A DNA stretch of 64,000 nt from Hyaloraphidium curvatum SAG 235-1 (Eukaryota > Fungi > Monoblepharomycota), in the NCBI GenBank assembly GCA_025558095.1, contig JAIVFI010000004.1:496001-560000 (forward strand), in the 5' to 3' direction. Positions 3,443-40,280 of the stretch are shown here, in pieces. The stretch's first letter is position 1. Every line of letters begins with the position of its first letter. The notes below the pieces were generated by a model. The model was not told the origin of the DNA, made no database searches, and saw nothing but the letters and a program-made list of their open reading frames with translations. Both the position numbers and the translations under genes were made by a program.

Positions 3443-6053
3443 CTACCCCGACCCGCCGTACGTTTTGCGGTAGAACGAGGGCGGGAGCGACTCGAGGATG
3501 CCGAACCACGGCCTCTCGACCGCCACCATTTCGTTCCCACCCGCAAAGTCCAGGAACATGAGCGGCTGGTACCGGTGGATCTTCAGGAACTGCGTCCCCG
3601 ACGCCAGTTCCCGCGGATCCCGGCCCTCGTCACCCTCGGGCGGCGCCCCGAGCTTCTCCTCCAACAGCTTCCGGTGCTTTTCCCGGCGCTCGCGCTTCTC
3701 GTCCTCGTGACGGTGCTTCTTGCGCACCTTCTTCTGGGCCCCGGGTTCGGCGTCGGGCTTCGGGGCAAGAGGAGGGCCGAGCTTCTTGATCTGCGAGGCG
3801 ATGCGCTTCCGCTTGGCCTGCGAGATGATGGCGTCCTTGGGCATCTTCCCCTGCGGGAGCCGGGGATACATTAGCGCCGACCGTGGGTCCTGCCCAAAAG
3901 ACGAGGTTCACCTTGTCGAGGTCGACCTGGACAAAGAAGGTCACGCCCCAGAAGATGATTGTGCTCGGCCGGGCGGGGTTGAAGGCGATTCCGACGATTT
4001 TGTCGCCGGTCCCAAGGAAGCGCGCGGGGAGGTCATTGGCGTACTCGCGCATCCAGTCCGTGAAGCGGCGGTCCTCGACGTCGTAGCACAGGAACTCGTT
4101 GCTCACGCACGCCACGACGAGGATGCTGTGCGAGGTGGAGTGGAAGGCCATGGCCGTGACCGGGGAGGAGAGACGCGGGACGGTGGCGTGGTGCTGCGGG
4201 GAACGGCGTGAGAAGGCAAAGACGGGCACGAGCGCCGACGACAGATACCTGGAGGGAATCGAGGTTGAAGGATTCGATGTGGCCGCGGCCGTCCACGCTA
4301 GCCAGCCACTGTCCATCGGCGCTCACTGCCAATGCAACGATGCCCCCGCGTCCGACGTGATGCTCAAACACCTTCACGACCTCCATGCTTTCCAGATCAA
4401 TGGCCCGGATGGCGCCGTAAATGTCGGCAACAATCAGGCGCAGGCAGTCTGGGGTGAAAACGAGCGCATGTGCGCCCTCGTCGAAGGGAAGATCGTTCAC
4501 TTTGCGCACCCGCACGGGATCGGCGGCGGGGTCTAGGCGGAAGAGTTTGGTCTCCTCCACGTCCGCCACGGCAACCCAACGCCCGTTCGCGGCAATGTCC
4601 CCGCACGTGAGGTTGTGACCTCCCGAAATCTGGATCTCCAGCACCGCACGGAAGCTTTCCTTGAGCTCGACAGCTGATCGGCGCTTTCCGCCCTCGTCGC
4701 CGGACGTTTCCACGTCCTCCACGCTTCCAAGCCGCCAGAGCTTGACGCTCTGGCTGAAGCGGCACATCAGGAGACGCTGTGAGGGGCACAACTTCAGGAG
4801 CGACCTCGCTGGGAACGGCGAAAGCCGCTTTTGCGCGACGTTCGGAAACTCCTGAGCCGGGCATGTCACCAGCTGCGTGTCAACGCCGCCCGTCACGAGG
4901 CTGTTGATGGGCTTCTCCTCCCAAAGGGCCAGCGCCCTGACATCGTGCGAATGCCAGCGCCGTTCCCCGGAGACAACCCAAGTGAGCCGCGGAGGCACGT
5001 CCGCATTCTGACCCTCAAACTCGTCCACTCGACGCAGCTGGACGACTTTGCGGTCCACGCCGCTGCTGAAGATCGCCGTCCCTGCCCTATTGACGGCCAC
5101 GCACAGGATGTCGGCGGCATGCACTTTCCGAAGGGTCTGCACGATGGTGCACGTGTCCCCGCTGAAGATGTGGAGGTTGCCAAGAGAGGTGCCCGCCACC
5201 AACTGTCCATCCGCGAGCAGCTCGACGGCCCAAACAAGGGTGTGCTCCCGTTTCTCCCTGTCCACCGTCATCCTCTGCAAAACGCGTCCCGTTTGAACGT
5301 CCCATTTCCTCACGGAGCTGTCGGACGACCCGGCAAAAATTGAGCTGTCATCCGCGGACCAAACCAGGGACAGCAAACGAGCTGGGCGAGCCAAAGAAGT
5401 TAGCAAGAACGAGCTAAAGACATGAAGACGGCAATCCCACCGTCAACTCTGTCCAACGCCCTCTGGAACTCCAAATTGCCGTCCGCGACATCGAAAAGCC
5501 GGATGGTCCCGTCCTCGCACCCCACAGCCAGCACAGTGTTCGCGTGATTGGGAGCAAGGCACCAGACGGCTCCGCCGTTGGAATCCAGGCGCCGTTTCGG
5601 CGCTAGAGTGTCCAAATCCCACTCGGTGATCCAACCGTTGTGGCCCGACGACAGGAGCCGCGGTGGAAGCGCGGCCAGCCTCGCTGACCGCTCCGCCCTG
5701 ACCGTCCCGTCCATGTCCTCGTCCTCGTCGTCATCTTCATCCTCCAAAGGCTCCGTTTGGTGAAGCCAACAGAGTCCAGCGATGGAGTAGTTGGTACCCC
5801 CAGGTATCACCTATCCACAGCGTCAGCACTCGCAGTCCCGCCACGGCTGGTCAAGCCACACCTTTCGAGCATGCCAATCATCCGCAGGCGCTCGGATCTC
5901 GATGTCGCCGTTGGCGCGCCCGCATGCCAGAAGGGGTCGCGGAACCGAGGCAGGAGTAAACTCCAGAGCGTTGACAGCGTAGGGTACGTAGTCGACAAAG
6001 CGGCAGCGGTGGACATTGACCGCCGAGGAGCCTGCTTCTGTCTGCGAGCCCAT
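3443..6053 (-). CDS. UTP4: U3 snoRNA-associated WD40 protein Utp4 (cirhin), multi-exon
   Basis: N-terminal VHRCRFVDYVPYAVNALEF, multiple WD repeats (GAVWCLAPN, SSVRKWDV, HSHDVRAL) and C-terminal VAVERPW...LPPSFYRKTYG. Confidence 0.9.
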
Positions 6054-6177: not shown

Positions 6178-7226
6178 ATGCCTTCCCAAGCTAGCCGACG
6201 CCTCGTGCCGATCCTTTCTTCCTTTGTCGCTGCTGCTCCCGTGCCGGCCGCCGTCGCCTCCTCCGGCTGTGCAGCACGTCGCCCTCTTCATTGCTTCACA
6301 AGGCAAGCTCGACCATCCCGCGGCATCTTCCCTATGGCTTCGGAGGTTACCGATCTGTATGTCTGTCCCCGGCTACTAATCTTCGGTCCACTGATGTCTG
6401 GTGGGCACCGCCTTTCGTAGCCCGGAGGCTCCCGGGACGGTTCGGAGAATCCGAATCTATACCCGGACGGGGGACAAGGGGACCACCTCGCTCTATACGG
6501 GGGAGAGGCGGGCAAAGGACGATGTGATCTTTGAGGCCCTCGGCAGTGTCGATGAGCTGACTTCGACGCTGGGACTTGCCTTGGAGCACTGCGAAGCTGG
6601 CGGGGAATCGCTTGCTGACTTGGCGAAAAAGCTGGAGGAGGTACCAAGCGTCGGCTGCTGTGGCACCAAAGCCGGTGCTCATGCAAGCTTCCTCTCTGCC
6701 CCACCGTAGATACAATCGCGCCTCCAGGACCTGAACTCGAACATTGCCACTCCGAGGAACTCGGAGAAGGTGACGCCGGACAGGCTAGTCAAAACAGAGT
6801 TTGACAGCGACGGCAAGCTGTCGCTGGAGCTCGAGAGCTGGATTGACAAGTACGACGACGAGCTTCCTCCTTTGCGGCAGTTTATTCTGCCGGTGCGGTG
6901 TGATTGCAGTCGGGGATGGCCTGAGTGTTGACCTGTCCTTGGCAGTCTGGCGGAGTTACCGCGTCGACTATTCACATTGCTCGAACGATTTGCAGGAGAG
7001 CGGAACGCAGGGTCGTGACTCTCGTTGAAGCTGGCATCGCCAGCCCTGGCTGCCAGAAGTACTTGAACAGGTGCGGGGATTTATCGCAATCGGAAACCGA
7101 TCCGAATTGACTAACTTCGGCATCAAAAGGCTTAGCGACTTCCTTTTCTGCGCCGCTCGATACGCCGGAATGAAGGCCGGCAAGAAGGATCGGATCTACG
7201 TAAAGCGCGATCTTCCTTCCAGTTGA
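6178..7226 (+). CDS. MMAB: PduO-type cob(I)alamin adenosyltransferase (MMAB), probable mitochondrial presequence, multi-exon
   Basis: RIYTRTGDKGTTSLYTGERRAKDDVIFEALGSVDEL, LPPLRQFILP-SGG, HIARTICRRAERR and YLNRLSDFLF. The Arg/Ser/Ala-rich N-terminus starts at ATG 6178; this start is inferred. Confidence 0.9.
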
Positions 7227-7381
7227 ATGCCGCTATGTAGTAAATGCCGAGATTGTATGGCTACATGGCGAAAAGCAGTGATCGTCGGGATGGGGTCTCT
7301 GTGGTCGTCACGCTCCGCCGAGTGACCAGGCGGACGAGTGACGAGGAGGCACGGCCCCCGCCCCTCCGCACATCATTCACG

Positions 7382-10300
7382 ATGGCGGACGATGTTGAGC
7401 ATCGGTCACTCGAGGAGCTTGAGGAGGACATTGCGCCGGAACATGAAGAAACGGGCGCTGAAGGTGCCGATGCCGCCGACGCGTCGGCCGAGGCGAACGG
7501 TGGCGAAGCTCCGGGTGTTGGAGAGGACGGCCCCGACGAGGACGCTGGCGAAGGAACTGGCGAGAATGCCACGATTCTTCGCGGAGGATCGGCCGGGGAA
7601 GGACCGTCCGGAACGACGGACACTGCCGCGCCGAGCGGGGAAGTCGCAGCAAACGGGACCCATCCTTCGCAGCCGGACGCGCCGCTGAAGGAACCAAACA
7701 TGGACGCAGAAGAAGGCGACGGCGAGGCCGACATGGAAATGAGCCCTCCGCCCACGCCGGACCCTCCCGAAATGCCCGTGGCTGCGAACACCGCGGACGC
7801 GTCGGACGCGCAGTCGGGCGGCGATCAACCTTTTCCGGGCGGGTCGTCAAACTTCGCGCCGCCGGAAACCACGTATCAGTATGTTTCAGTGGGGCCGCCT
7901 TCCGCGGACCCCGCGGTCCCTCCACGACCGACCGAAACCAAGAAGAATTCTGCTGTCCCGCCGACTCGCCAGGACCGCTTCCAGAAACTGGAGCTCCGCA
8001 TAGCCAACGACCCGTGGGACACTGATGCCTGGCTGGGTTTGCTGGGGGAGGCAATGAGACGCGGCGAGCAGTCGATTATCCAGGATTCGTTTGAGCGCTT
8101 CCTGAAGCAGTTTCCGACGTCGGTGAGTAGACGCGTGTCTTTCAATTTGCTCAAATCCCAGAACATCCGTTTCAGGCTCGGCATTGGATTGCGTATGCCG
8201 ACTTTGAGATTGCTCGCGGTGACGTCCAGCGAATCGAATCCATATTTGCTCGCTGCCTCCGCTCCGTCCTCGATGTCGATTTGTGGAACTGCTACTTGTC
8301 GTATGTGCGGAAACGATACAACAATGACAAGGATGCCACGCATCGTTCGACCGTTCAGAAGGCGTTCGAGTTCGTGCTACAGAATGTCGGGCTGGACAAA
8401 GACTCCGGGCCGCTCTGGGGAGACTACATCGCCTTCTTGAAAACCGGCGAGGTAAGCGTCGTTGTAGGCCATGTGTCTGCCTGGGGGATGTTGTGGCTTT
8501 CCTTGTGCCCGGGTCGTGAGAATCGATACGGCCATTCGTTCGCGCCGCGCGTGTCTCGTTCCTTCCTCATTTCGTCTTGCTTCCTTCAAACCCTTTGCTT
8601 CCGATCGTGATGCCCAAAGACACGCAGCACGTATGAAGAGCAGCAGAAGATGGATCTCCTACGAAAAACCTATCATCGCGCCCTTTCCGCGCCCATCGCC
8701 AACATCGAGCAGCTGTGGCGGGATTACGATTCCTATGAGAACGGTCTTAGCCGGATGACGGTGCGATCCGCGGCGTGCCAGCACCTCGTTCAAGAGACTT
8801 ACATGTTGCCGCATGTCGCTGCAGGCCAAGAAGTTCATTTCGGATCGATCACCCGGTTATATGCTCGCCCGAAGTGCGCAGAGGGAGCTCCGGATTCGCC
8901 TAGAATCCCTCGACATCGCCCAGAAGAATTGGCTTGCCAAGCCCCCTACGTGGAGCGAGAAGGAGTGCCAGATCGTGAGTTGCAAGGGATCTTGCTGCGG
9001 TTTGTACAAACCAGCTCTCTTCAGCTCATGACATGGAAGCGCTACATCGAGTGGGAGCGATCGAACCCCATGAAGCTGGATGACAAATCGGGGCTCGCGA
9101 ACCGCGTCGTTTACGCATACAAAAGGGCCCTCTTGATGCTGCGCATGTTCCCGGAACTCTGGTGAGATCGTGTCTTCGCTTCGCATCGCGCACTGACAGC
9201 TCCCAACAAGGCACGAGGCATCTGCGTATCTGAGCGAAGTCGGCAGGGGCGAGGATGCTGTCGCGATGCTGAAACAGGGTGTTGAGGCAGTTCCCACAAG
9301 GTATGCAGTTGCTGTGTCCACAGACTGCGCGCCTCTGACCTGCCCTTAGTATTCTGCTGCACATGTCACTCGCCGACCTTCTCGAAACCCGAAACCAAGT
9401 TCCTGCAGCGAAGCAGCTGTACGAAACGCTGCTCACCAACTTGGAGCAGTCGATCGCGGACATTACCTCTCGGGCGGAAGCCGAAAAGATCAGGGTCGTG
9501 AGCGCGCTGGCACAGCAGCACAAGGCCGGTCCACCCGGTGCAATCATGGACGGAGAGGAGAGGGAAGAACGCCGACAGAAGGAAAAGGCCGCGGTGGACA
9601 AGGTGGAAGCTGCCAGGTTGAAGGACGTTGGCGACGTGAAAGAAAGCTTGGCCTTGGCCTGGATCTTCTACATGCGATTTTCTCGCCGGACGGAGGTACC
9701 TTGAATCCGTGGTGAGCCTTGATTCCCGACTTACGCCCGTTTTGCCGCAGAACATCAAGGCCGCGCGTGCTGTTTTCTCGAGGGCTCGTAAATCGCCGAA
9801 CTGTTTGCCTCACGTCTATGTTGCCTCGGGTAAGAGGGAACCTCAATTTCACTCCTTCCTCTAAATGCCACTGGCAGCCCTCATGGAGCACTACATCAGC
9901 AAGGATCCCCAAGTTGCGGGCCGCATATTCGAGTTGGGACTCAAGAACATCCCCGAGGGGAGCGGCGAGCTTCTTGTGGGGTACACATCCGAGTATTTGG
10001 ATTGGCTTATTTCCCAGAATGACGATAACAGTGAGTCCAGCAAAGTGTCCCAGTTCATTGGAGCCCGCTGATCGATTGGCTGGCAGACACGCGAGCTTTG
10101 TTTGAGCGGTCTCTTCTGGCAGTACCCGCGGATAAGGCTCGAGTCATATGGTCCAAGTTTGCTGCCTACGAAGCGCAGTTTGGGGATCTTGGAAGCTTGC
10201 TGCGCGTGGAAAAGCGCCGAGCGGAGGCGTTCCCCGAAGGTGACGAGGTCATGCTTTCACTCGCCCTGATTAATGACACGATCTCCCGCAGACAACTACC

Positions 10301-25311: not shown

Positions 25312-25556
25312 AGTCGGATCGGCAATCTGTTGATCTTTCGAGGGTTGAGGGTTGAAGGTGCAAGTCTGCAAGTCTTCAAAGTGGACTCAACTGTCCGAAA
25401 TACATAGTTGAATCGCTGATTTGCCGGTTTGGAAACTGCGGGGCTGTCGGTCCGAAAGTCGGTGGGTGATGAGTGGGCGGGCGGCACGTTTTCCCGAGAG
25501 GCGCACTCCGCGTTCCGGAGCCGGTGCCCGGCGGCAAAGGGGGCGCCTTTTCGGAA

Positions 25557-28500
25557 ATGGACGATTCGGACGGCGAGGCGCCAATTTGCGGGCGGGGCAA
25601 GCCGCCGAGGGTGCCGGACGATGACTCGGACGGCGGCGAGGTGGCGGCGGGAAAGGGCGGGTCGGGCGGTTCCAGCGAGCCGGGCGACATCGAAAGTGAG
25701 ATGACGGCTTTCATTTGCGACGGGCGGAATCTGACGGCCGGCTTCCGAAAAGCGGAGGGCGGCTCCGGGGCTTCCGGTCCAGCGGGCCAGCCTCGGAGCG
25801 GCGGGCCTTCCAAAAAGGGGGCCGGCTCGGAGGACGATGATTCGGAGAATGGAGGCGACGAAGAGATGGGGGATGGCGAGGAGCGGAGCGATGGGGAGGC
25901 GGGAGGTGGGGGTGCGAGATCCGGGGGGGTGGCCGAGCGGCGACTGACGTGTTCCGGCAGATCGAGAGGCGGACGATCAGGTGATGCAGGATGTTTGGAA
26001 GGTGCAGAAGAAGCTCGAGGGTGGGATCTGGCGTGCATCGGGTTTTGCAGCCTCTGATTTTCGGGGGTTGCAGAAGGGGACGGCGATTTCGATGCGGAGG
26101 GCTCGACGTCCGAGGAGTGCGAGGGCTCCGAGATCGGCTACGATTCGGACGAGGGCGGCGATCGTTCCGGCCAGGCGTCGGAGAGCGAGTCGGACGGATC
26201 GGATGTCGATCGGAGGCCGAGGCGGGGTCGGGGACCGGCGATGCGCGGTCGAGGCGCTCCGGGATGGGCGATGCGCGCAAAAGGGGTGCATGCTGCGGCG
26301 AGGGTGCTCGAGATGGCGGAAGCGGCCGATCCGGAAAGCGGGGCGAGCGACAACGAGGCGAGCGACGACGAGGCAAGCGAGGACGGGGCGGTCAAGCTGC
26401 GCGCGCTAAAAGGGAAGCAGGTCGTGCGGGCGGACGGGTCCTTCGGGAGCAACGAGCGGCCTTCGGCGGCGCGCCTCATGCAGCCGGCGAGCGTGCAGCA
26501 TCCCGTTCCGCGCATAACGGTCGTCGACGACGAGGCGGCGCTGTTCTTCGGGCCGGCCGGCGGTGCGGACGGAGGCGGCGATCGGACCGAGGCGCTCGAC
26601 GGCGACGGCGACGAGGAGATGGAGGTGCTCGAGAGCGGGCTCGTGGAAAAGGGGCGGCTTTCGCCGTTGGAGCTTCCGATCAAGCGGAGGGCGCCCGGTT
26701 CGCGGTCGGCCTCGCACTCGCCGCCGCCGACGCCGACGCCCAAAACTCCGGCCCGCAAGAAAAAGGCCAAGGCGGACGCGGCAGCGAAGGAGCAGGCCCG
26801 GGTCAACCCGGCGGCGGAAATTCAGCGGACGTTCATGTTTGCGCGGGACAAGCTCGGGCGCGTGTTCATGGTGCGGCGGGTGGACGACGACGGACACAAG
26901 TACCCTTGCTATGCGGCGCCGTTGTGCAAATCCAAGAACGTCGAGAACACCTTCCGGAGGCACGCCAGGACGTGCGATGAAGTCGCGAAGCTGGGCTACG
27001 GATTTCTCGACATCACCACCACGCAGTACGGGATCGATCCGCCGCCGGGGGCGTCGGCGGTTCAGCGGGCGGACAAGTTCCTGCAGAAGATGCGGGGTGC
27101 AGTGCTGTCCAACAACAAGACAGCGCCGGAGGAGGAGCGGATCCGGCCGACCAGGAAGGCGGTCAATCCCGTGATCGCGCCGGAGCTCCGGCGTGCGATC
27201 GAGGACGGCGCGTTTGCCAAGACCAGCGCTGGCGATGTGCTGCATTTCGTGCTCGGCGAGGACGGCCGCTTCGTGTGCGGGGAACACGGCTGCGCGGCAA
27301 CGGATCTCCGTCGGCACGCGGAGAAGTGCCCGGTCGCTGCCCATGCCGAGGGCGCGCTGGACCTGACGGTGACGCAGTACGGCATCGCGCCGCTGGCCAA
27401 GAAGGGCGCCACGAAGCTCGAGCGCGCGGACCACTTCCTCAACCAGCTCTTTCGAGCGACCATCTCGATCGGCAAGGCCGGCGCAGCCAGTGCGAAGCGG
27501 GCGGAAGTGATCGAGAAGGAGGCCGGGTCCGCTTTCGAGCTGAACCGCCTGAAGATCATCACCGAGCTGCTGCGGCAGACGGGCGCGGTGTCGCTGGCGG
27601 AGCTGGAGAAGGGCAAGATGTCGTACGAGTGCCTGGTGCAGGGCTGCAACCAGCAGATCCAGTAGTGGGTTCATCACGCGCAGCATCGCGCCGGCGCTCG
27701 ATTTCCCGCTGACCCACTATCCTTCCAGTGCCAAGTTCGTCTGCACGCGCGTCTGCGCCCGGCACCTCGGGGCCCAGGGCTTCGGACTCGTCGTCTGCGC
27801 CGGCTGCGGCGTTATCGCGGACTCGATCATGGCGGGCGAGTACTGCACGGCATGCCTCAGCGACGCCTCGGCATCCTCCCCGGAATCCCGGCACCTGCAC
27901 CCCCTGGCCTACGCCGACTGCGACCTCGCGCTGTACCCCCTGCCGCCGCCCGGCACGCCCATCTTCTACGGCATCCTCGGCACGCCCGAGAACCTCCCCC
28001 TGCTCCGCTTCCGCGAGAAGCTCGTCGAGGTGCGCGGAACTTTCGTCTGCAGGCCGTCGTCGTGCGGCAAGCCCAAGTTCTCGTGGGTCTTTTGCCGGCT
28101 GCGTGTCGAGCATGCGGCCTTGCTCACGCACTCTGCCGACAGGGAAGCAGCAACCTGCTCTTACGAATGCTTCCACGAGTTTGCCGCGGAATGCGGCCTC
28201 GAGTCGCCGCCCCGCTGCGCGAGGGAGCGGTGCAAGCGCGTCGTCAACTTCGGAAACCCGCGCCCCGCCTACTGCATCTGGTGCGCCAAGCACGACGATC
28301 TTCCGCCGCCCGGCGTCGGGCACCCGGCGTCGTACGCGGACTGGGTGCCGAACAGCAAGAGGTGGGCGCGACCGGCGGGGGCTTCTCGTGGCGGGGACTC
28401 ACGATTTTCCGCAGGATCCTGAAGGTGCCCGATTGCGTGCCGGCCAAGATGCCCGGCGCCAAGGAGACCTTCTTCGACGACCCCGAGAACGAGCGGCTCT

Positions 28501-28882
28501 ACTACGAGGAGAACATGGATGTCTGTGCCTACTGCAACGGGTTCCACAGGTGGGTTGTCCGCCCCGGCCGCTCGATCAGCTGCCGACCGTGCACCCGCCC
28601 CGCAGGTCGCACGACGACGACCTGGAGCCGCTCTTCTGCACACGAGAGTGCGCCGTTTCGTACGCCATCGTCGAGAACGTGCGCCTGCTCACGTGCACGC
28701 GGGGCTGCGGTCAGATGATCTCCCGCGTGCACGGGTCGATCATGCACTGCGGCGGGCCCAAGTGCCGCCAGCGGCTAACGGCCGGCACGTACTTGGACAA
28801 CGTAAGGAGCTGGCCGCAGCTTGCTCCGCTGTACCCCGAGCTCAACTTCGACGACATCTCATTCGAGGGGGACGAGGAGTAG
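25557..28882 (+). CDS. Cassette gene A: unknown ~1013-aa protein with an acidic disordered N-terminus, two tandem ~100-aa C2HC-type repeats and a multi-Cys C-terminus (6 exons)
   Basis: Phase-consistent introns at 25906-25960, 26021-26073, 27662-27728, 28362-28414 and 28550-28605 join the partial ORFs into 3042 nt. The internal repeat reads C-x4-5-C...RRHAxxC...LDxTxTQYGIxP...RADxFL, and the C-terminal half has many CxxC/CxxxC pairs. Confidence 0.7.
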
Positions 28883-29104
28883 GTGGTGGCCGAGGCGGCG
28901 GCGGGAAGCGATGCAGAAGGGACGTTTTTCAGATTCACCAGTTTTGCGATTTGCCATTTGTACAGATGATGTTTCGGGCAATTTGGAGGATGACGTGGTG
29001 CCGGGCACGTGCAAATGTGGAGCGGCTGGGGAGGCGAATCGATGAAGAAGCCGCACCGGCCCAGCGGAGCTCCGACAGCCGACAACCCCGGAGCCCTCGC
29101 AACC

Positions 29105-32100
29105 ATGGCGGCCCGTAGGGCGGTCACGGGCGAGCGTGTCCGGCAGATGCTCCTCGACAATCTGACCCCGCTCGCGAGGAAGCTTGTGGACGAGGACGAG
29201 GAGGCGACGGTCAAGCTCAAGCTCGTCGGGCCGGCCGTGCAGGGGGCGCTCATGATCTTCCATGCCGAGAGTCCCTTTACGCTCGCCCATCGGGACGCGA
29301 TGCTGAGCCACCTGCGCAAGCAGCGGGGCGTGGAGCGGGCGCGCGTCGTGACCAGGACCATCAACAACCTCGACGACGGCTTCATCATCGAGGTCCTCAT
29401 CGGCAACCCCGATCCGGACCCCACGTCGCCGCACCCACACTCGAATGCGCTCTCGCAGATCCTGCGGAAGGACAAGGGCCCGGGGGCGCAGCGCTCGAAG
29501 GACGACGATGACCCGTTCGCCGGCAACCTCCCGCACCCACACGCGGCCATGCTCGCCTGGATCATCGTCGGGACGCTGCCGGTCACCGTCTGGAACCCCG
29601 CGCGAGGGGCCATGACGACTGCGGAGCGCACGGCGCAGCAGGCGCGCGTCGACGCGCTGGTGCCGCTCCGACTGCCGTACGCCCAAGTGCGCGCCCTCGT
29701 CTGCGAGGCGCTCAACTACCCGACGGGACCCCTCACGCCGCTGACCGATTCCACGAGAGTGCTGGTGCGCAAGTTCGAGCGGATGGGCAGCGACGGTTCG
29801 GACTTCTGGGCTTCCCTCGGGGTGCGGATCTTTCGAGGCGCTCGGGGCGCATCGAACTCATCGTCACGCCCTGCAGATCGGCCATGCCAGCGGTTACGCA
29901 TTCAAGACGGAGGAGCGCGCCTTGCAATGCGACTACGCTGATCTGGGCACCGTTGCGGAAGTGGTACCGCCTCCGCCGCCGCCACCCCCGCCCGAAGGAG
30001 CCGACGACGATCCCAACCCCAACCCGAACCCGAACCCGGCCGCCGATTTCGCGAACTGGAATATCCGCCGTGTGCACACCTACCCGGGCTTTTGGGGCTT
30101 GAACGTCTCCACCAAGCTGGCTCCCTTCACGGCGGCGCTGCACCTGGGCGAGGGCCACCCCGGGAACTGGGTCCCGAACGCCGCCACCATCGCTCTGCTC
30201 GGCATTCAGGAGGCGCCTATCGACCTCATCGTATGCGATCCGATTTCCGTCGGCGAGCTGCTGGACAAGGTCAAGGTGCCGCCGAACGGGACCGTGGTCA
30301 ATGGGAGCGGGCATCTGCGGAGCAAGGTGATCTCGCGCCTCGTGCATCCGACGGAGGAGCGGCTGCGCACGGCGGCACGTGCCGATCGGGGACCGCGGGC
30401 GCCGAAGGAGAGGGCGACGCTGGTCGACGACTTCTACCGGGAGGACAAGATGGCGCTGTCGACGCACAACGTGGATGCGGCCGAGTACGGCACCGGCGGG
30501 TCGCCTGACGCGCACGTCAAAAGCCCCGCTCGCCGCCCTGCCGCGTTTCCGCCCCCGCCGGAGTCGGACGACCTGCCCGAGGTCCCCCGCGTCGTGATCC
30601 AGATCCGCGTCTCGGCCAAGGATCTTGCCTCGCCGCGGGAGTGCATCTGGCAGGCGGTGGTCCTGCTCCGGGTCATCGAGTACATCGTGCGGCGCAGCGG
30701 CGTGCTCGAGATCATCTTCGTGTTCGAATACGGCGCAGTCTCAAACGCGTCGTACCCGGCGGTCCGCGACAGGAGCGTGCTCTGGAAGGCCATTGAGGGC
30801 GACTTCTCGCAGATTCGCAGCAAGCACAGGCTTGCTTTCGTCAGGCGCAGGTCCCCGGGGAACCCTCCGGTCGGTGCTCATCGGCGCACCCTCGTCCTTT
30901 CTGTCGCCCCGCACCGCATGGATCGCTTCCACCTGCGGCTGGGGGACGAGGCGGCCAAGATCTACGAGGGCCGCTTGCCCAATGACCCCGAGCGCAACAT
31001 GTTTTGCAGCTTCACCCCGGACTCGGCCGACCCGACCGAGTTTGTCGAGCTCGCGCCGGGGAGCCATGCCCTGCGCGTCGAGACGCAGCGCCTCAAGGAG
31101 CTGGAGCTCAACACCGCCGCGCGTGCCAGCAGGATGCACATCGTTGCTTCGGACATGAACTTCAACGCGGCGGTCGATCGAGGGGCCAACAGCCTGCTCC
31201 AGTTCAACATTCAGACGGTGGGCGGGCGCTTCATCTTTTGTGGGCCATGCTAACGCAAATGCTCGCACAGGTCTTTGCCTTCGTCGCCTGTCACGACTAC
31301 TCCAAGGCCGTCCTCATGGACCGCTCTTCCTCGGTCGGCAATCCCGCCTACGGCGTCGACGCGGCCGAGGCCGTGCACCCGATGACCACGCTGCGCCTGG
31401 CCAACACCAACTTCGGCGTCCACTACGTCGCCGAGCACCGCGACGACCTCGAATTCACCACCGTCAGGCTGGACCACGTCTCGGCCAGCCACGAGGACCA
31501 GGCAGAGGCGCAGTTCTTCGAGGAACTGGTCATGGTCGGATGCGCTGCGATCGTCTTTCTCCGCGACCTCTCGCGCCTGACCCGCGGCGGGATTGAGGCC
31601 GTGCTGCGAATCCTGCGCAAGCTCCAGGCCGCGAGCGCCACGCTCGTCCTCATGCACGTTCCGCACTCGTTCCTGGCAAACTGGCCGAATTGCGAGGCGA
31701 TGCTTAGGGCTCTGTGGACGCCGCTGCTGTTCGAGCGCTACCTGCACGCTGTCGGGCAAGCGGCCATGCGCGAGTTCATGAACGAGGTCGACAAGTTTCG
31801 GGCGACGGCTTCGGACTCGACACAAATGATCAACTTCCCCGTCGTCCTCCAGGGCCTGGACGGGAACCCGAACCCCGAGCTCATGCGCCGCGTCGAGACG
31901 GTCGCGGCGCGTGAACGGGCCGCGGCGCAGACGCTGGCTTCGGAGCGCTACGCCCGCTTCCTCACGCGCGTCGAGTCGTCGGCCGCGATCCCCAGCAACC
32001 TCGCTCCCCCGCCGGGCACGACCGAGGTCACGCAGGCCATGATGGTGGAGTTGGCGCAGATGGCGCAGGTCGTGGTCGGGCCGCAAACCGACGTTCGAGG

Positions 32101-32527
32101 CTACGGGCAGGACCTGCCGACGCAGGTTTACCCGGCCCCGTCGTTCACCCGGGAGGGCGTGTGCGCTTGTGAAGCACAGTTCTTTCACGTTCCCTTTTGC
32201 TGGTGCATGCCGGGCGAGTGCCCGTTCTGCGACAACTCGCAGCCCCTGCTCTGCGAGAGCGGCTGCTCGCCGTTCGACTGCCATTGCGCGCTCGGCTGTA
32301 CCTGCAGGTGCCGGCGCGGGCCCGGAAACACCCCCGCCTGGTGCTGCAAACACTCGGACATCGGCGTCACGAACCCGCAGCTGACGGCCTTCCGCATCGT
32401 CGAGGGCCTCGGCCTCGACAACGACGAGCTGCCGGTCGCCCTCCAGAGCAGGGCTCTGGTCGACGCCGACACCGCCGTCGAGGCCTACCGCAGCACCGGC
32501 GCCAAGGACGACGACGACGAGGAGTGA
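29105..32527 (+). CDS. Cassette gene B: ~1104-aa protein with two tandem serine-recombinase (resolvase)-like domains and a Cys-rich C-terminus (3 exons)
   Basis: Phase-0 introns at 29822-29876 and 31218-31270 (branch GCTAAC) join three long ORFs. Domain 1: VVIQIRVS...Q...FEYGAVSN...R...LVLSVAPHRMDR. Domain 2: AVLMDRSS...DHVSA...IVFLRDLSRLTR...LRKLQAASATLVLM. An in-frame upstream ATG at 29042 is an alternative start. Confidence 0.65.
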
Positions 32528-32541
32528 AGAGCTGGAACGAG

Positions 32542-32586
32542 TTTCACGACGGACACTTTTCGCAACGGACGCTTTCGCAACGATGC
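32542..32586. repeat. Three imperfect ~15-bp direct repeats immediately after the gene B stop
   Basis: TTTCACGACGGACAC, TTTCGCAACGGACGC and TTTCGCAACGATGC. Confidence 0.6.
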
Positions 32587-33047
32587 TTCTCCGAGATACA
32601 CACCGGATCGTGCTTCGACCGCAGATACCCTCTCGAATGTACAGCTTTGTCTTCAATTGGATTCGTTCGATTTTCCGACTTTGCCGCTTCGTCCGCCCCG
32701 TCCGAACCTCTCGCAAACCAGCCAAGAGTTATAAAAGGGCAGGCAATGAAACGGGGAGCAGAGGGAAAAGGGGAAGGTATCGAACGGGGAGGAAGCGAAA
32801 AGATGAGAAGATCGGAAATAGAGCAGTTCGAGCGAGCACTACGAAGCATTCCCGGCACGGCGAACCTAATCATGGCTTTGATGGGCACTGATCAGCTCTA
32901 CCTGCTCGTCGCTCCGGTGGCTCGAACGTCTGGCGAACGTGCCGCATCCGAGCGTCCCCCAGGTCTGCGGTGTGGCAAGTGCCGGGCCCGGATGAACCGC
33001 CATAACCCCCGCGATTCTCTCCTCGAGCAATAGCTGCTCTTTTAACC

Positions 33048-36000
33048 ATGAAGGTGTCTTGGACGGGGAAGCGCCCTGCTTCTTCCAAGCCCGGGGAGCC
33101 GGCGGGCCCGACAGAGGCTCTACCGTCGTCGGCACCGTCTCAACCGCCCGTGTCTCCCGCGTCGTCGCGTCTCGGGGCCATTGCGGGCCATCTGGCAAAG
33201 CCCGGAGCGCCCGGAATACTGATTGCGAACCGAGGAGAGATTGCAATCAGGTGATTTGGTTTCCGGGGCATTGAGCTCGGAGACAGTCGAAGCTGACGCG
33301 ACGGCACGACAACGGCCAGGATCGCGCAGGCGGCGGCTTCGCTGGGCCTCCGATCGATCGCCGTCTTTTCTGAGGACGATTCCTTGAGCCTGCATGTCCG
33401 CAAGGCCGACGAGGCCTACCCGCTCAAGGGTAGAGGGCCTTCGGCGTACCTCGACGTGGCCCAGATCGTCTCGATCGCGCGGGAAGCGAAAGCGGCGGCC
33501 GTGCATCCCGGCTACGGCTTCCTCTCCGAGTTGCCCGAGCTGCCGGCCGCACTGCAGGCCGCCGGGATCGCGTTCGTCGGGCCCTCGCCCGCCTGCCTCG
33601 AACTCTTTGGGGACAAGCAGGCCGCCAAGGACCTGGCGTCCAGGTGCGGCGTGACGATCGTGCCCGGCACGCGCGCAGTGGCTTCGGCGGAGGAGGCCCT
33701 CGTCTTTTTTCGCTCCGTCGCCGATCCCGCCGTTTACGAGGGTGTGATGGTCAAGGCGGTCTACGGCGGAGGCGGCCGCGGCATGCGCGCCGTCACCTCG
33801 TCCGCCGAGCTACCCGACGCCCTGGCGAGGTGCCAATCGGAAGCCCGGGCAAGTTTCGGCCGCGGCGAGGTCTACTGCGAGGCCCTCGTCTCGCGTCCCA
33901 GGCACATCGAGGTGCAGCTCCTTGCGACGGCTTCCCAAAGGATCACGCTCGGAACGCGCGACTGCACGCTCCAGCGGCGCCACCAAAAGATCGTCGAGAT
34001 CGCCCCGGCGCCTTTGCTTGATCCCCGCGTTGCTTCGGAGCTCGAAGCCGCAGCCATCCGGATGGCCGCCGAGGCGCGGTTCGTGGGGCTCGGCACGTTC
34101 GAGTTCCTCGTCAAGGGCAACCGCTGGTGGTTCATTGAGACCAACGCCAGGGTGCAGGTTGAGCACACCGTGACCGAGGAGGTGTACGACGTGGACCTTG
34201 TCGCGGCCCAGATCCGGATCGGGCTGAACAACAACATTTCTTTGGAGGAGCTCGGATTGGGCGACTTTGTCGGCGGGCATGTGAGACCGAGGGGTTGGGC
34301 GGTGCAGCTGAGGGTCAACGTGGGTCCATTCCTCCCCGATCCCAACTTCGTTCATGCCCGCTTTCACAGATGGAGAAGGCCGAGTACCTCGGCGGCCCCG
34401 AGCCCGTCTGGGTCCCCACCTCCGGCTTGACCATCCACGCTTTCGAGCCGCCCTCGGGCCGGGGCATCCGCGTCGACGCTGCGGCGTATTCCGGGTACCG
34501 GACCAACGCCTCCTTTGACCCTCTGCTGGCCAAGCTGATCGTGTCTGGCGCCTCGCTGGGGAACGTGCTCAAGCGGTGCGTCAGGGCCCTGGAGGAGTTC
34601 AGGATCGAGGGCGTCGAGACCAACGTGCCGTTCCTGAGGGCGGTGCTCGAGGCGGAGGACGTCGCCGTTCTCGGATCGCACGCTCCCGCCGGCCTCGATC
34701 TGCACACAAAGTGGATCGAGGAAAAGATGGAGGCGCTCGCAGCTGCGGCAGGGTGGAAGGGCAAAAGGACGGACTCCAAAAAGCTGTTCTTTTCGGGTGC
34801 GGAGCTTGGCGTGGTGACGCCGGCGCGGCAGGAGGGCGGGGCCGAGATGCCGGCGATCGCGACGCCGCCGGGGACCGTGCCGACCGTGGTGCCGATGCAG
34901 TCGACGATCGTCAGGTGGGTTTGGCAGAACCTCATCGGAAACTGCCGGCCCGTTGATCGGATCCGCCCAGCATCGACGTCAAGGTCGGAGACAGCGTCAA
35001 GAAGGGCCAGCAGCTCGGCGTGCTCAACGCGATGAAGATGGAGCACGTCGTCTACGCGACCGTCGCGGGCACGGTCCGCGCCATTACCGGCACCGTCGGG
35101 CTTACGCTCCCCAAAGCCTTCCCGTTCGCCTTCATCGAGCCCTCGGAGGGCGTCGGCGAGGAGGAGGAGGTGCTCGCACAAGTCGACCTCGATCACATCC
35201 GCCCCGATCTGGCCGAAGTCAACTCGCGGATCGCCCTCACCCAGGACGCTGGCCGCCCCGACGCCGTCGCGCGCCGCCGCAAGCTCAGGAAGCGCACCGC
35301 ACGCGAAAACATCCTCGACCTCGTCGATCCCGACAGCTTTATCGAGGTCGGCGCGCTGCAGCTCGCGGCGCAGCGGCAGCGGAGGAGCTTCGAGGAGCTG
35401 CTGAAGCTGAGCCCGGCGGATGGGATGGTTGCCGGTTGGGCTCACGTCAACGGGGACCTGTTTGACGACGAAACGAGGACGAGGGTGATGGTTTCCAGCT
35501 ACGACTACACGGTGTTGGCGGGCACGCAGGGCGTCATGAACCACAAGAAGGTGCGTCGGATCGGCGGTCGGAGCTGGACAGGAACTGAACAGTGTTTCGC
35601 CCGAGCAGAAAGACCGCGTTTTCAAGCTTTGCCTCGAGTACAGGGTTCGCGTCTCCGGTTGCCTTCAAGTTCGATAAGGTCCTCACCGACTTCGTCTCCG
35701 AAACAGGTTCCTGCGGTATTCTTTTGCGAAGGGGGCGGCGGTAGACCCGGGGACACCGACATCGAAGCTGCAGGAGGCCTTGACGGCAACACTTTCCGCC
35801 TCGTGGGTCTGCTGATACCCCGATGTCGTCTGTCCTCATGTCTTGCGATTCGCAGTGGGCTCAACTTTCCGGTCTTGTGCCGCTGATCGGGGTGACGAGT
35901 GGCTACTGCTTTGCGGGCAATGCGGCCATCCTGGGACTCTGCGATGTCATCATTGCGACCGAGGATAGCAACATCGGGATGGGAGGGCCGGCCATGATCG

Positions 36001-37108
36001 AGGGCGGCGGTTTGGGAGTGGTCAAGCCGACCGAGATCGGCCCCGTTTCCGTGCAGGCTCCGAATGGGTGGGTCCAATCGCGGTGGCGACCGGTGTGCAG
36101 TTTGCTAAGGCCCACACCTCCCAGTGTGATCGACGTCGTGGTCAAGGACGAAGCCGAGGCCGTCAAGGTGGCCAAGAAGTACCTCAGCTACTTCCAGGGA
36201 AATTTGAAGGACTGGAGCTGCGCAGACCAGCGCACTCTGCGCCGCCTGATTCCCGAGAACCGCCTGCGTGCGTACGACGTGCGCGACGTGATCAACGCGC
36301 TGGCGGATACGGACTCGGTGCTGGAGCTGCGCAAGCACTTTGGCCAAGCCATGATCACTGCGTTTATCCGCATCGAGGGGAGGCCGATCGGGGTGCTTTG
36401 CAACAATTCGGCGGTGCTGGGAGGTGCGATTGCGTCGGAGGAGGGGGAGAAGTCGGCGAGGTTCATGCAGCTGGTGAGCTTGAGATTTGGACGTAGCTGC
36501 GTCTTTCAGGATGCTAATCTCTTGCAGTGCGATGCGTTCGACATTCCGATCCTCGCGCTTTGCGATACACCCGGTAGGTGGTTCATTTTCCTCCCACCCT
36601 TCAACTCCTTGACGAGCACCCCTGCTTTCAAGGCATCATGGTCGGCGTCGAGCACGAGAAAACGGCCCTCGTCCGACGCGTGTCGAGGATGTTTGCGGCT
36701 GCCGGGTCCATCACGGTGCCTTACCTCATGGTCGTGCTCCGAAAAGGATACGGGCTGGGCGCGATGGCGATGGGCGCGGGATCGTTCCACGGACCCTTGC
36801 TCAACGTGAGCTGGCCGACGGGAGAGTTCGGCGGGATGGGATTGGAGGGAGCCGTGAGGTTGGCGTACAAGAACGAGCTGGCGGCGATCGAGGACCCGAA
36901 GGAGCGCCTCAAGGTCGAGAACGACATGATTGCTCAGCTCTACCAGGCCGGAAAAGCTCTGCGAGCGGGCGAGTTTCTCGAGATTGATGCGGTGATCGAC
37001 CCTGCGGAAACGCGGAAGTGGGTGCTCGCTGGTTTGAAGAAATGTGTCGGAGGGCGCGGATGGACACCGGGACGGCCCAAGAAGAGGCCGATGGTCGATA
37101 CCTACTAG
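33048..37108 (+). CDS. Single-chain biotin-dependent acyl-CoA carboxylase (BC-BCCP-CT, long-chain acyl-CoA carboxylase type), multi-exon
   Basis: BC: ILIANRGEIAIR, HPGYGFLSE, GGGGRGMR, RDCTLQRRHQK, ARVQVEHTVTE. Biotin site: NAMKME. CT: DYTVLAGTQG, EGGGGRPGD, GYCFAGNAA, SWPTGEFGGMGLEGAV. C-terminus RPMVDTY. Confidence 0.9.
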
Positions 37109-37235
37109 ACGAGGACTGTATTGCGAACTAGACGATCTTTGGCACATGCTGGATCCTGGGCGCCGTCTGTTGTTCGTGAACAAGGACAAGCGAGGTGCGG
37201 AAAATGAGAACCACGAATCCCCGACATCTCTGAGC

Positions 37236-37980
37236 AAGGAAACGACAACGGCCGATATGAAACAGCTATTCAGCCGTACGAATCATGAGTAGGCTCGAAG
37301 AAATGTGGTCAGTTTGCTGACGCCGGCATCTGCGCAAAGTTATTCCCGCCAAGATCCCCAACCTGTAGGACAATTGCTGCAAAACCAAATGCCCAAAGCA
37401 AGAATCCAGTAGGAACAAACATTTGACGTCTTTCAGTCAATCACCGAACGCTCCACGACGGCATCTAATTCGGCCAGGCTGTTTGCCGACAGAACCAGGA
37501 GCACGAAACCGATGCAAGGGAAACGAAACCGGCCGACTTGAAACAGCAATACGAGCTTGCGAAATGGAAGTCGGCGGAAGGGCTTCGGCGAGCAGGCTGT
37601 CCTTTACATCTGCGCAAAGTTTGACCAGTTCCGGTGCCTGCCACGCAAGCGTGTCGCAGAAGGTCCAAGTGCCCAAACCAAGTATCCAGCAAAAGTAACG
37701 AACCTCTTGGCACGCATTCGATGTCGTGCGGCTCCTCGATAACGGCTCTACAAGGACCTGCGGCCTGTCGGAATGCTCGTTGCCGACGGATCTGGAACCA
37801 CGAGCCCGACGCAAAGGAAACGGCACCGGCCGATTGGAGACAGGTGTACAATAGTGCGGATATGCAACGAGCGGAATAGCTCCGGCGAGCAGGCTGTTCG
37901 CTACATCTGCGCAAAGTTCAGGCGCCAGCGGACTAGCAAGTCCAGGCGTTCGAAAACCGCCCAACGAGCCATCGGAGCGT
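37236..37980. repeat. Degenerate three-unit tandem repeat, period ~280-297 bp, in a lower-GC intergenic region
   Basis: The exact 15-mer CATCTGCGCAAAGTT occurs at 37327, 37607 and 37904. Each copy lies exactly 91 bp after a conserved AA(A/G)GGAAACG..CGGCCGA..TG.AACAG-like block (37236, 37516, 37813). Confidence 0.85.
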
Positions 37981-38399
37981 TGAAAAATGCTTGCCGCGCT
38001 ATGTACTGGCTCGGCAGACGATTGAATGTTGCCCCGCCGGAAAGAGAACGCGGTCTCGCCCAACGAGGAAACTCGACGTCCCAGCTCACTGAACGCGCCC
38101 AAAACCACCCCGAGTACGTGTAGATGACCTCAAGTGATCCAATTTAACGGCAAGATGGCCGAAGGGAAGGGAGGTAGGTCGTACGGGCGTCCGTGCCGTC
38201 CACGACCGCGTCCCGGATGGGTGTGCCAATCCCGTCGAATCCCGGGCCGGCGCCATCGCCTTCCACTCGTTCATTCGACATGGCAACTTCCGTTCCATAA
38301 CCAGCATCGTACCAGCGCCAATAGATTTGAGCGGTCGGACACCTCGACGCGTCTGTTTGGCATCGCGACGACACGTCACGAACGCCGCGGAAAACGATC

Positions 38400-39182
38400 A
38401 CAGCCGACTCGCTCGTGGCGGGCGAGGTCTCCACCGCGTGCCTCGCCGACTCGTTGCCCCGGATCCCGAAGGTGCGGAGGCTGCACGTGCCGGCCTTCGC
38501 CAACGGCGTTGCCCGCGCCCGCGCGTTCTACGGCGCCGTCGGAATGCCGGACAAGCTCCCCATGACGCGCTTCCGCGAGGCGGTCCTCGCCGTCCGAGGT
38601 GTTCTGGTCTGCAGGCCGTCGTCGTGCGGCAAGGCCAAGAACGTGTGGGTCTTTCCTGTCCACTCGGGAGCGCCGCCTTGGCTCACAAAGCACGGCCTGC
38701 AAGGAAGCCGCGACGTGCTCGTACGTCTGCTTCCTCGGGTTCTCGAAAGACTGCGGCCTCGACGCGCCGCCCCGGTGTGGGCGGAACGGGTGCCCCCGCC
38801 TTGTCAACCTCGCCGATCCGCTGGGATGCTTGTGCTCCTGGTGCGCCACGAACGGCGACCTGGCGCCCGGGAAAGAAGGGGGGGGGGGGAGGGAGGAAAG
38901 GAGAAGGGGGGGGACGACCTGATCCCCTACTTCTGCTCGCGCGAGTGCCGCATCCTGTACTCGATCGTCGAGAACGTGCGCCTGCTCACGTGCACGCGGG
39001 GCTGCGGCCAGATGATCTCCCGCGTGCACGGGTCGATCATGCACTGCGGCGGCAGCAAGTGCCGCCAGCGGCTGACGGCCGGCTCGTACCTGGATAACGT
39101 CAGGAGCTGGCCCCAGCTCGCCCATCTGTACCCCGAGCTCAAGTTCGACGAGATCGCCGCGGCGGAGGGCGATGAGGAGTGA
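38400..39182 (+). pseudogene. Truncated, frameshifted copy of the 3' part of cassette gene A
   Basis: AGEVSTACLAD, FRE.V..VRG..VCRPSSCGK.K and EAATCSY.CF..F...CG...PPRC align to gene A in shifting frames. The last ~230 nt are near-identical to 28655-28882 (IVENVRLLTCTRGCGQMISRVHGSIMHCGG.KCRQRLTAG.YLDNVRSWPQLA.LYPEL...EGDEE*). A G-rich tract lies at 38878-38913. Confidence 0.85.
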
Positions 39183-39475
39183 AGAGGCGGCGGCGATCGG
39201 TTTGGAGCCAGCGAAAGAAGCGGCTGTCATGTCGGGCACACGGCCTCCGATGCCGATCAGCGCACCTGCACGTGCGCCGGTTCCGGTGGGTGCCTGGCGT
39301 GCGGGGGCATCCTCGCTCGCTCGGTCGTACGGGGCACCAAGCGCACGCGCGCCGAGGCGGGTCTGCCGTGACGGCTGAAGCGGTGGGCCGGACGCTACGA
39401 AATTAGTCGTGTAATCGAAGCCGTGATCGCTGGCATCTCCATTATCCCGGGCGTGAAGCAGGTCGCTGTGGAAAG

Positions 39476-40114
39476 ATGAGTCGCCGGGAAAGCCCGGTAA
39501 CAGCCCAGGAGTCGACAGTCCACCCAACCATGACCGTTCCCACGCCGCCGCCCCGTCGGCCCGTCACGGCCGAAACTGTCCGACAAAAGCTAGCCAGGAA
39601 CAGCCTGAGCGGGCTCGCGGAACGCTTGCCGGACAAGGACGAAGAGTACGACCATCTCACGGGCTACGGCTACGTCCATGGGGACAGGAAGCTCGACTAC
39701 GACTTTCCAAGCATCGGGACCGTCGCCGAGGTCGACCGGGAGGCAGAGGAGGAAGACCCGGCCAAGTGGTCGCTGCGTCGCCTGCACATCGCGCCCGGCC
39801 CCTGGGGTCACGCCGTCTCCCGCAAGCTGGCCTTCTTTGCCATCGCTCTGCATGTCGGTGATCCCGGCGCTTGGGTGCCGCGCCGAGGCGCCTACCTACG
39901 CTCGTCGGATCAGCCGCCCGACCCGATCGCCACGGGCCCGATCCCGGTCCAAGAGCTCCTGTGGGAAGCGAGGCTGCCGCAAGGTAGCGCTCTCTGGCGG
40001 AGTGAAGGCCGCCTCCGCACTTCGATCGTAGGCACGCTGGTGCGCCTCACGGACGAGTCGGCGGAAGCCGCAGGGGGGCAGAAACGCACGCGCACCGAGG
40101 CGGGTCTGCCGTGA
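39476..40114 (+). pseudogene. Internally deleted, 3'-truncated copy of cassette gene B (212-aa open ORF lacking both recombinase-like domains)
   Basis: RRPVTAETVRQKLARNSLSGLAERLPDKDEE matches the gene B N-terminus RRAVTGERVRQMLLDNLTPLARKLVDEDEE. It is joined directly to GY...DYDFPSIGTVAEV...W..RR.H..PG.WG..VS.KLA.F..ALH.G..G.WVP, which matches gene B exon 2. Confidence 0.8.
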
Positions 40115-40280
40115 ATCCCGATGCGGACGGCCGGACTTTGGACATCGATGCATTGTTCGAGGCAGTGATCGCTGATAACGGAGATCTGGGGGGCCGAGGA
40201 CGCGCCATTGCCTGGCTGGACAGGACGCCAAACCACCACCCGAGGCAGGCTTCTGAGGTCCGACCGGCCGAGCCCCGGCC

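Follow-up and report, generated by a model that had tools for sequence, protein, structure and literature searches.

A two-gene unit, A-B, copied to several sites in the genome of the monoblepharid fungus Hyaloraphidium curvatum and possibly derived from an old mobile element

Hyaloraphidium curvatum is a monoblepharid zoosporic fungus with a genome of 31.9 Mb in 55 contigs and a G+C content of ~65%. A window of 64,000 bp on contig 4 of this genome (positions 496001 to 560000) contains two adjacent genes, here called A and B, followed farther on by fragments of both, and it raises the question of whether the pair is, or once was, mobile DNA. The original prediction for this window described A as a zinc finger protein and B as recombinase-like and proposed that the intact pair (A1-B1) and the fragments (A2-B2) are an autonomous element and its nonautonomous derivative. 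We find A-B, copied as one unit, at no fewer than five sites in the H. curvatum genome.

On the + strand, the window runs from a fumarate reductase/cytochrome b5 gene (OSM1-like) through A1, B1, and a biotin carboxylase/carboxyltransferase gene to a ~290-bp three-unit array, A2, B2, and a PAS/histidine-kinase-like gene. A1 and B1 lie, as first described, on the + strand 222 bp apart between the OSM1-like gene and the biotin-dependent carboxylase. The account of the second copy likewise agrees with the sequence, in which A2-B2 is found ~6 kb on in the same order and orientation, with internal deletions and a change of frame and without the recombinase-like domains of B.

A whole-genome DNA search recovered exactly three copies: the two in the window plus a third, on contig 15. 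The contig 15 copy consists of the equivalent of window positions 25401-25866 joined directly to 27869-28550 and 28602-29179, and its left boundary with the window copy is sharp at 25401 (TACATAGTTGA...). Its A gene (A3) is intact, with 385 amino acids (aa) and two introns, and precisely lacks the central 2 kb of A1. Beyond A3, the conserved spacer leads into the opening of B, of which the start codon and 25 codons are present before similarity stops. Homology of A2 to A1 extends back to 27817, and the contig 15 form is therefore a deletion derivative. The last intron of A1 (28550-28605) is precisely missing from A3, which keeps the two preceding introns; an intron has been cleanly lost from one paralogue or gained by the other.

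More distant relatives were sought with profiles of the A last-exon module and the B C-terminal module, which were searched against the whole genome. The A profile matched contig 4 (twice) and contigs 15, 25, and 10, and the B profile matched contigs 4, 27, 10, and 25. Contig 10 carries a deeply diverged pair, an A-like open reading frame (ORF) with two A modules and a Zn2Cys6 domain followed by a B-like gene, and contig 25 carries another, a B-like gene of ~1400 aa followed by an ORF that ends in an A module. Protein identity between these subfamilies is 20 to 30%. An iterated local jackhmmer search unites B1 with the paralogues on contigs 27, 10, and 25, and B1 and the contig 10 B gene have an intron at the same place, after ...CAG ACG. 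Of the four B modules found in the 32 Mb, three are <5 kb from one of six A-module loci and on the same strand. For the two pairs that were not ascertained in advance (the pair that prompted the search being left out), the chance of such linkage is ~3e-6 by a rough estimate. A weak extra match to the cysteine-rich module of A was seen at 334098-334268 of contig 5 (- strand, E value of 0.0024), with no B-type module detected on that contig.

The five sites are on four contigs, amid unrelated housekeeping genes, and have the unit alone in common. Copy 1 is between the fumarate reductase and the carboxylase, copy 2 between the carboxylase and the PAS/histidine-kinase-like gene, and the contig 15 copy has cytochrome c peroxidase on one side and a convergent kinase on the other. 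The contig 10 pair is downstream of malate synthase, and the contig 25 pair is upstream of a WD40 gene. Homologues of A and B are thus linked elsewhere, on contig 15 and as the diverged pairs of contigs 10 and 25, which favors the earlier claim that the two genes were copied as a unit.

The features discussed here are collected in Table 1. Genes in this genome have short GT..AG introns of 53 to 93 nt with branch sites resembling CTAAC or CTGAC, and the introns of A1 span the same range; the last of them is the same as in the public model. The public annotation of A1 covers only the 3' part, partly in the wrong frame. The two B1 introns (29822-29876 and 31218-31270) agree with the public 835-aa model KAI9031300.1, which ends early; the long third exon of B1 is backed by conservation with the paralogues. 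The joined spliced models of A1, A3, and B1 were used for local alignment, for jackhmmer and tblastn scans of fetched loci, and for substitution rates only, and searches outside the genome were run exon by exon or with the public B model.

Table 1. Features of the A-B locus in window coordinates, followed by Resolvase-domain genes located by contig
Feature	Position	Strand	Remarks
A1-B1, complete copy	25401-32527	+	Sole complete member of its subfamily
A1 upstream/5' region	25401-25556	+	From blastn and MAFFT against the contig 15 copy; OSM1 end ~90 bp upstream
Gene A1, 998 aa, six exons	25557-28882	+	Introns from frame and paralogue comparison
A1 exons	25557-25980, 26074-27661, 27729-28082, 28143-28361, 28415-28549, 28606-28882	+	
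A1 central 2 kb with C2HC modules	25867-27868	+	Single copy in the genome; cleanly missing from the contig 15 copy
A-B spacer, 222 bp	28883-29104	+	~71% conserved in the contig 15 copy
Gene B1, 1104 aa, three exons	29105-32527	+	Exons 29105-29821, 29877-31217, 31271-32527
B1 "domain 1"	30567-31217	+	R-x-S invariant in three full-length paralogues; no significant family match
B1 C-terminal module	31466-32200	+	Common to the contig 27, 10, and 25 paralogues; invariant R-x-x-R; faint serine-recombinase-like signal
B1 CxC-type cysteine cluster near the C terminus	32160-32352	+	Aligned position by position with the contig 27 paralogue
A2-B2, truncated copy	38403-40114	+	Order and orientation as in A1-B1
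A2, 5'-truncated pseudogene of A	38403-39182	+	From blastn
B2, open 212-codon remnant of B	39476-40114	+	~35 N-terminal residues plus first part of exon 2
Resolvase-domain genes	Contig 4, 373085-373513; contig 34, 542991-543419; contig 46, 168839-169267; contig 9, 539598-540026		PF00239, 50-59 bits for this row and the next; four identical scores
Further Resolvase-domain genes	Contig 9, 339269; contig 9, 338229; contig 22, 421710; contig 2, 639991		PF00239

The second copy in the window is decayed. By blastn, A2 positions 38913-39155 match 28616-28858 of A1 at 87%, positions 38526-38867 match 27964-28307 at 70%, and the leftmost match pairs 38403-38450 with 27817-27864 at 79%. Between A1 and A2, identity in the last A exon is 87% at the DNA level and 84% at the protein level, and the remainder is at ~70%. 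A2 lacks an ATG, the reading frame of its middle exon does not fit those of the neighboring exons, nothing is found to the left of the 27817 equivalent, and G-rich filler stands in place of A1 28308-28615. In B2, residues 57-204 match window positions 29874-30389 with 34% identity (tblastn, E value of 1.5e-21); ~210 codons of B exon 1 are deleted, and the entire C-terminal half of B is gone. The 12-mer GAGGCGGCGGCG, which had been noted after both A copies, does have exactly two occurrences in the window (~0.2 expected by chance), one 10 nt and the other 2 nt past the A stop, and it is simply the tail of the homologous block. A 63-nt direct repeat with 82% identity is present at 39331-39393 and 40075-40136. 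The 3' end of B2 (...KRTRxEAGLP plus stop) recurs 150 nt past the A2 stop, so that a copy of this 3' end stands on either side of B2.

Nonsynonymous (dN) and synonymous (dS) divergence was compared exon by exon. In the last A exon, dN and dS were 0.113 and 0.392 for A1-A2 and 0.172 and 0.586 for A1-A3. In the first retained exon, they were 0.43 and 0.41 for A1-A2, as expected of neutral change, and 0.197 and 0.479 for A1-A3, and in exon 1 of A1-A3 they were 0.095 and 0.149. These values put the dN/dS ratio of A1-A2 at ~1 for the first retained exon and at 0.29 for the last exon, and synonymous sites of B1-B2 are saturated. Judged by these rates, selection maintains A1 and A3, and A2 is largely defunct. 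We considered and rejected gene conversion as an explanation for the good preservation of the last A exon, because dS is ~0.4 in that exon and in the decayed exon alike; the uneven divergence is therefore constraint and not age. The 5' region and exon 1 of A1 and A3 (window 25401-25866 against contig 15) differ at a dS of 0.15, versus 0.48 to 0.59 in the remaining gene. This suggests either ectopic gene conversion between the contigs or constraint at the nucleotide level.

The A1 protein has an acidic N terminus and two C2HC-like modules and is rich in cysteine in its C-terminal half, and no Pfam match was obtained with A1, A2, or A3. The A-like ORF on contig 10 is the sole A-type sequence to exceed the PF00172 (Zn_clus) cutoff, with 29.2 bits versus 21. 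A is a cysteine-rich, zinc-binding protein that probably binds DNA, because the Zn2Cys6 domain of this contig 10 relative is genuine. The B protein, at ~1100 aa, is an orphan. The CxC-type cluster near its C terminus has a counterpart in the contig 25 paralogue, which also ends in a similar cysteine cluster when judged by eye, without alignment. On contig 27 (451463-452524, - strand; locus positions 4299-5519), the B C-terminal module and CxC cluster stand alone, with 24% identity to B1, directly downstream of an ORF with a protein kinase domain on the same strand and with no A-like gene nearby; the module may be fused to another gene or be a gene in its own right.

What, then, dispersed the pair? 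We tentatively favor, at a little short of an even chance, a lineage-specific gene pair that was dispersed as a unit and represents an old mobile two-gene element or its domesticated remnant. The features that resemble an element are the dispersal of the bare unit to unrelated sites, the truncated derivatives, and the linkage that was kept through deep divergence. In the scheme that we infer, the ancestral unit would have been an old DNA element that is now immobile, wholly or for the most part, or survives in domesticated descendants. B would have supplied strand exchange, A would have supplied DNA recognition, and insertion would have occurred without inverted repeats or target duplications. 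The window holds the only complete representative (A1-B1) of the youngest subfamily, and the truncated, dead A2-B2 copy lies 6 kb farther downstream.

A series of observations counts against an origin in mobile DNA, beginning with the identity of B. The curated Pfam cutoff for PF00239 (Resolvase) is 23.3 bits, and B1 falls below it, with 13.7 bits for exon 3 and 15.9 bits (E value of 0.015) for the trimmed domain; PF00239 gave no match on the other B segments tested, including those of the paralogues. A genome-wide PF00239 scan found nine Resolvase loci, and B was not among them. B has negative scores against the genome's own recombinases, with hhalign probabilities of 0.2% and 0.06%. NCBIfam and PHROGs searches of A and B gave no match at an E value of ≤1, and Pfam gave no transposase or recombinase above threshold. 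Domain 1 of B scored 15.6 by hhalign against serine recombinases, no better than controls. In a PDB profile search, the sole match of B was the Hda/DnaA lid (E value of 0.29), and look-alikes proposed by a protein language model (Protein Atlas) were P-loop GTPases at the chance level of 0.82 to 0.84, or none. These competing hints point weakly to P-loop-type folds. Two single-sequence AlphaFold2 models of B had a mean predicted local distance difference test score of 38.

The ends of the copies and the searches outside the species also weigh against a mobile unit. No inverted or direct terminal repeats were found at the copies, which bears out the earlier report that inverted terminal repeats are lacking, and no target site duplication was found among them. 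The copies have no right end in common, and the left boundary at 25401 is common to only two of them. Word-index searches with B exon 3, the public B model, and the last A exon returned only proteins of this organism. A HMMER profile built from B exon 3 and its contig 27 paralogue and run against 1.84 billion representatives returned only itself and three repeat-like long proteins, and scans of metagenome and viral contigs with A and B profiles gave no match. No homologue thus turned up in other organisms to lend mobility comparative support. On contig 25 the two genes are in reversed order, B preceding A.

The hint of a recombinase came from the C-terminal module of B. A profile of this region from four paralogues was compared by hhalign with an alignment of 13 diverse serine recombinases, 11 bacterial and 2 fungal, the bacterial genomes having been reached through a carboxylase profile search; a contig scan with a profile of the genome's real recombinases had no match. 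The comparison gave a score of 23.8 with P = 0.0075. Its 95 columns are in the correct register, placing DLSRLTR on DRLGR; both arginines are invariant in the four paralogues, and the aspartate varies. The highest score among 150 column shuffles was 15.1, and the reversed alignment and an unrelated biotin carboxylase alignment scored 14.0 and 17.3, respectively. When a serine recombinase hidden Markov model was run over 2171 ORFs (~230 kb of genome), the contig 25 paralogue of B ranked first after the true recombinases, ahead of all others of the ~2160 ORFs that are not recombinases, and B1 ranked ~29th. The R-x-S motif of domain 1 (Table 1) is also seen by eye in domain 2 in two of three paralogues. 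That B contains two homologous tandem recombinase domains was considered and rejected, since domain 1 and domain 2 matched each other with an E value of only 0.23 by hhalign. Of the description of B as recombinase-like, the faint, register-correct C-terminal signal survives; the Resolvase match is below its cutoff, the genome's recombinases are not matched, and the two domains are not detectably related. That the C-terminal module is a true homologue of serine recombinases seems possible on this comparison of profiles, although we lean against it.

The most serious competitor, to which we give roughly one chance in three, is a host gene-pair family in which A is a lineage-specific zinc finger regulator and B its functional partner, not a recombinase. 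Adjacency would be selected, a few duplications would have arisen through host processes (for example, ectopic recombination or repair-mediated dispersed duplication), and copy 2 and the B stub on contig 15 would be pseudogenized duplicates. Several observations favor this alternative. A1 and A3 are under purifying selection in place, with dN/dS of 0.29 to 0.41, and A3 persists without B, as a host gene might. Both genes have spliceosomal introns, one of them at a position conserved between B1 and its contig 10 paralogue, and the A-like protein on contig 10 has a typical fungal transcription factor domain. The copies are few and all old; the whole-genome search found no near-identical ones, and dS between copies is 0.15 to 0.6. 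The B module also occurs without A, beside the kinase ORF on contig 27, no transposase family is recognized, and terminal repeats were not found. Against a host pair, five unrelated sites share the two-gene unit alone, and flanking genes were never coduplicated, which is unusual for host-mediated duplication. Internal deletions and truncations of the copies are typical of element decay. In addition, adjacency was held across subfamilies at 20 to 25% identity, although there is no shared divergent promoter that could account for it, and the recombinase signal in the C-terminal module of B, weak but in register, also tells against a host pair.

A bolder version of the mobile reading seems unlikely to us. 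B would be a new, extremely diverged branch of serine recombinases and, together with A, would define an unrecognized superfamily of intron-bearing eukaryotic DNA transposons that lack inverted repeats and target duplications and have so far been seen in a single monoblepharid fungus. The proposal that A1-B1 is a currently active autonomous element, with A2-B2 as a nonautonomous derivative mobilized in trans, is improbable. The reading frames of A1 and B1 are intact, and a deleted second copy in the same orientation is only 6 kb away. However, A2-B2 shares neither end with A1-B1, since it starts at the 27817 equivalent, stops inside B exon 2, and is followed by nothing that matches the region after B1. 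It is also without the left 2.4 kb, including the boundary at 25401, which is the only boundary common to any of the copies. A dS of ~0.4 for A1-A2 and a protein identity of 34% for B1-B2 indicate that the second copy is old, and young copies are absent from the genome. An ordinary segmental duplication confined to the locus, which the original prediction had allowed for and which two copies 6 kb apart in the same orientation might suggest, has next to no probability, because copies at sites between unrelated housekeeping genes exclude a purely local event, as do the third copy on contig 15, the diverged pairs on contigs 10 and 25, and the unduplicated carboxylase between the two copies.

Serine-recombinase-driven mobile DNA is rare in eukaryotes, and the published cases are, to our knowledge, IS607-like elements. 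Transposons of the IS607 family consist of two genes, use a serine recombinase, and have neither inverted repeats nor target site duplications (PMC6188088). Lack of these hallmarks is hence not fatal to an old element here, although nothing positive shows transposition. Like this family and its eukaryotic relatives that carry Fanzor/TnpB (PMC6188088, PMC3627910), A-B has two genes in one orientation, and neither terminal inverted repeats nor a target site duplication were found. A further likeness may lie in the putative catalytic protein, with an active-site region reminiscent of R-x-S ... D-R-x-x-R. In contrast, B is under the Resolvase threshold, lacks a MerR-like N-terminal DNA-binding domain, and is ~five times larger. 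The partner of B is a zinc finger protein and not TnpB/Fanzor, both genes have spliceosomal introns, and the copies are few and old.

Two other kinds of transposon invite comparison. PIF/Harbinger elements encode a transposase and a separate Myb-like DNA-binding protein, and A-B is similar in that an enzyme gene and a separate DNA-binding accessory gene would form one moving unit, but no DDE transposase domain, terminal inverted repeats, or 3-bp target duplication was found for A-B. Kyakuja-Dileera-Zisupton (KDZ) elements are fungal transposons with large, poorly conserved proteins, CxC-type cysteine clusters, and accessory genes. A-B is likewise fungal and has large, poorly conserved proteins with CxC-type clusters, but neither A nor B has a Pfam KDZ or CxC match, and the cysteine cluster of B is C terminal.

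H. curvatum also has genuine intron-containing serine-recombinase elements (on contigs 9, 22, 34, 46, and 2 and at 373085 of contig 4), which, in the same genome as A-B, are mobile DNA that encodes a serine recombinase. They differ from A-B in scoring 50 to 59 bits with PF00239 and in having copies of at least 5.8 kb at 99 to 100% identity, and B has no detectable relationship to them. The Resolvase loci on contigs 4 and 34, when compared, had at least 5.8 kb in common at this identity. The identically scoring loci look like a young family of mobile elements that bear a serine recombinase and are unrelated in sequence to B. In the contig 22 locus (417000-426900), the long ORFs at locus positions 1105-2448 and 6707-7807 beside the recombinase gene resemble, by eye, parts of other mobile elements.

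Beside these intron-containing recombinase elements, A-B is a second, unrelated-looking two-gene unit that was dispersed as a block in an early-diverging fungus. It could represent a new kind of transposon or a striking gene pair that was held together through repeated duplication and deep divergence. Either way, A and B are orphan proteins with clear conserved motifs, and their linkage provides a handle on their function.

The array upstream of A2 (window 37236-37980) consists of ~3 units of 290 bp and has no similarity to A1-B1. Its units at 37478-37621 and 37775-37918 are 73% alike.

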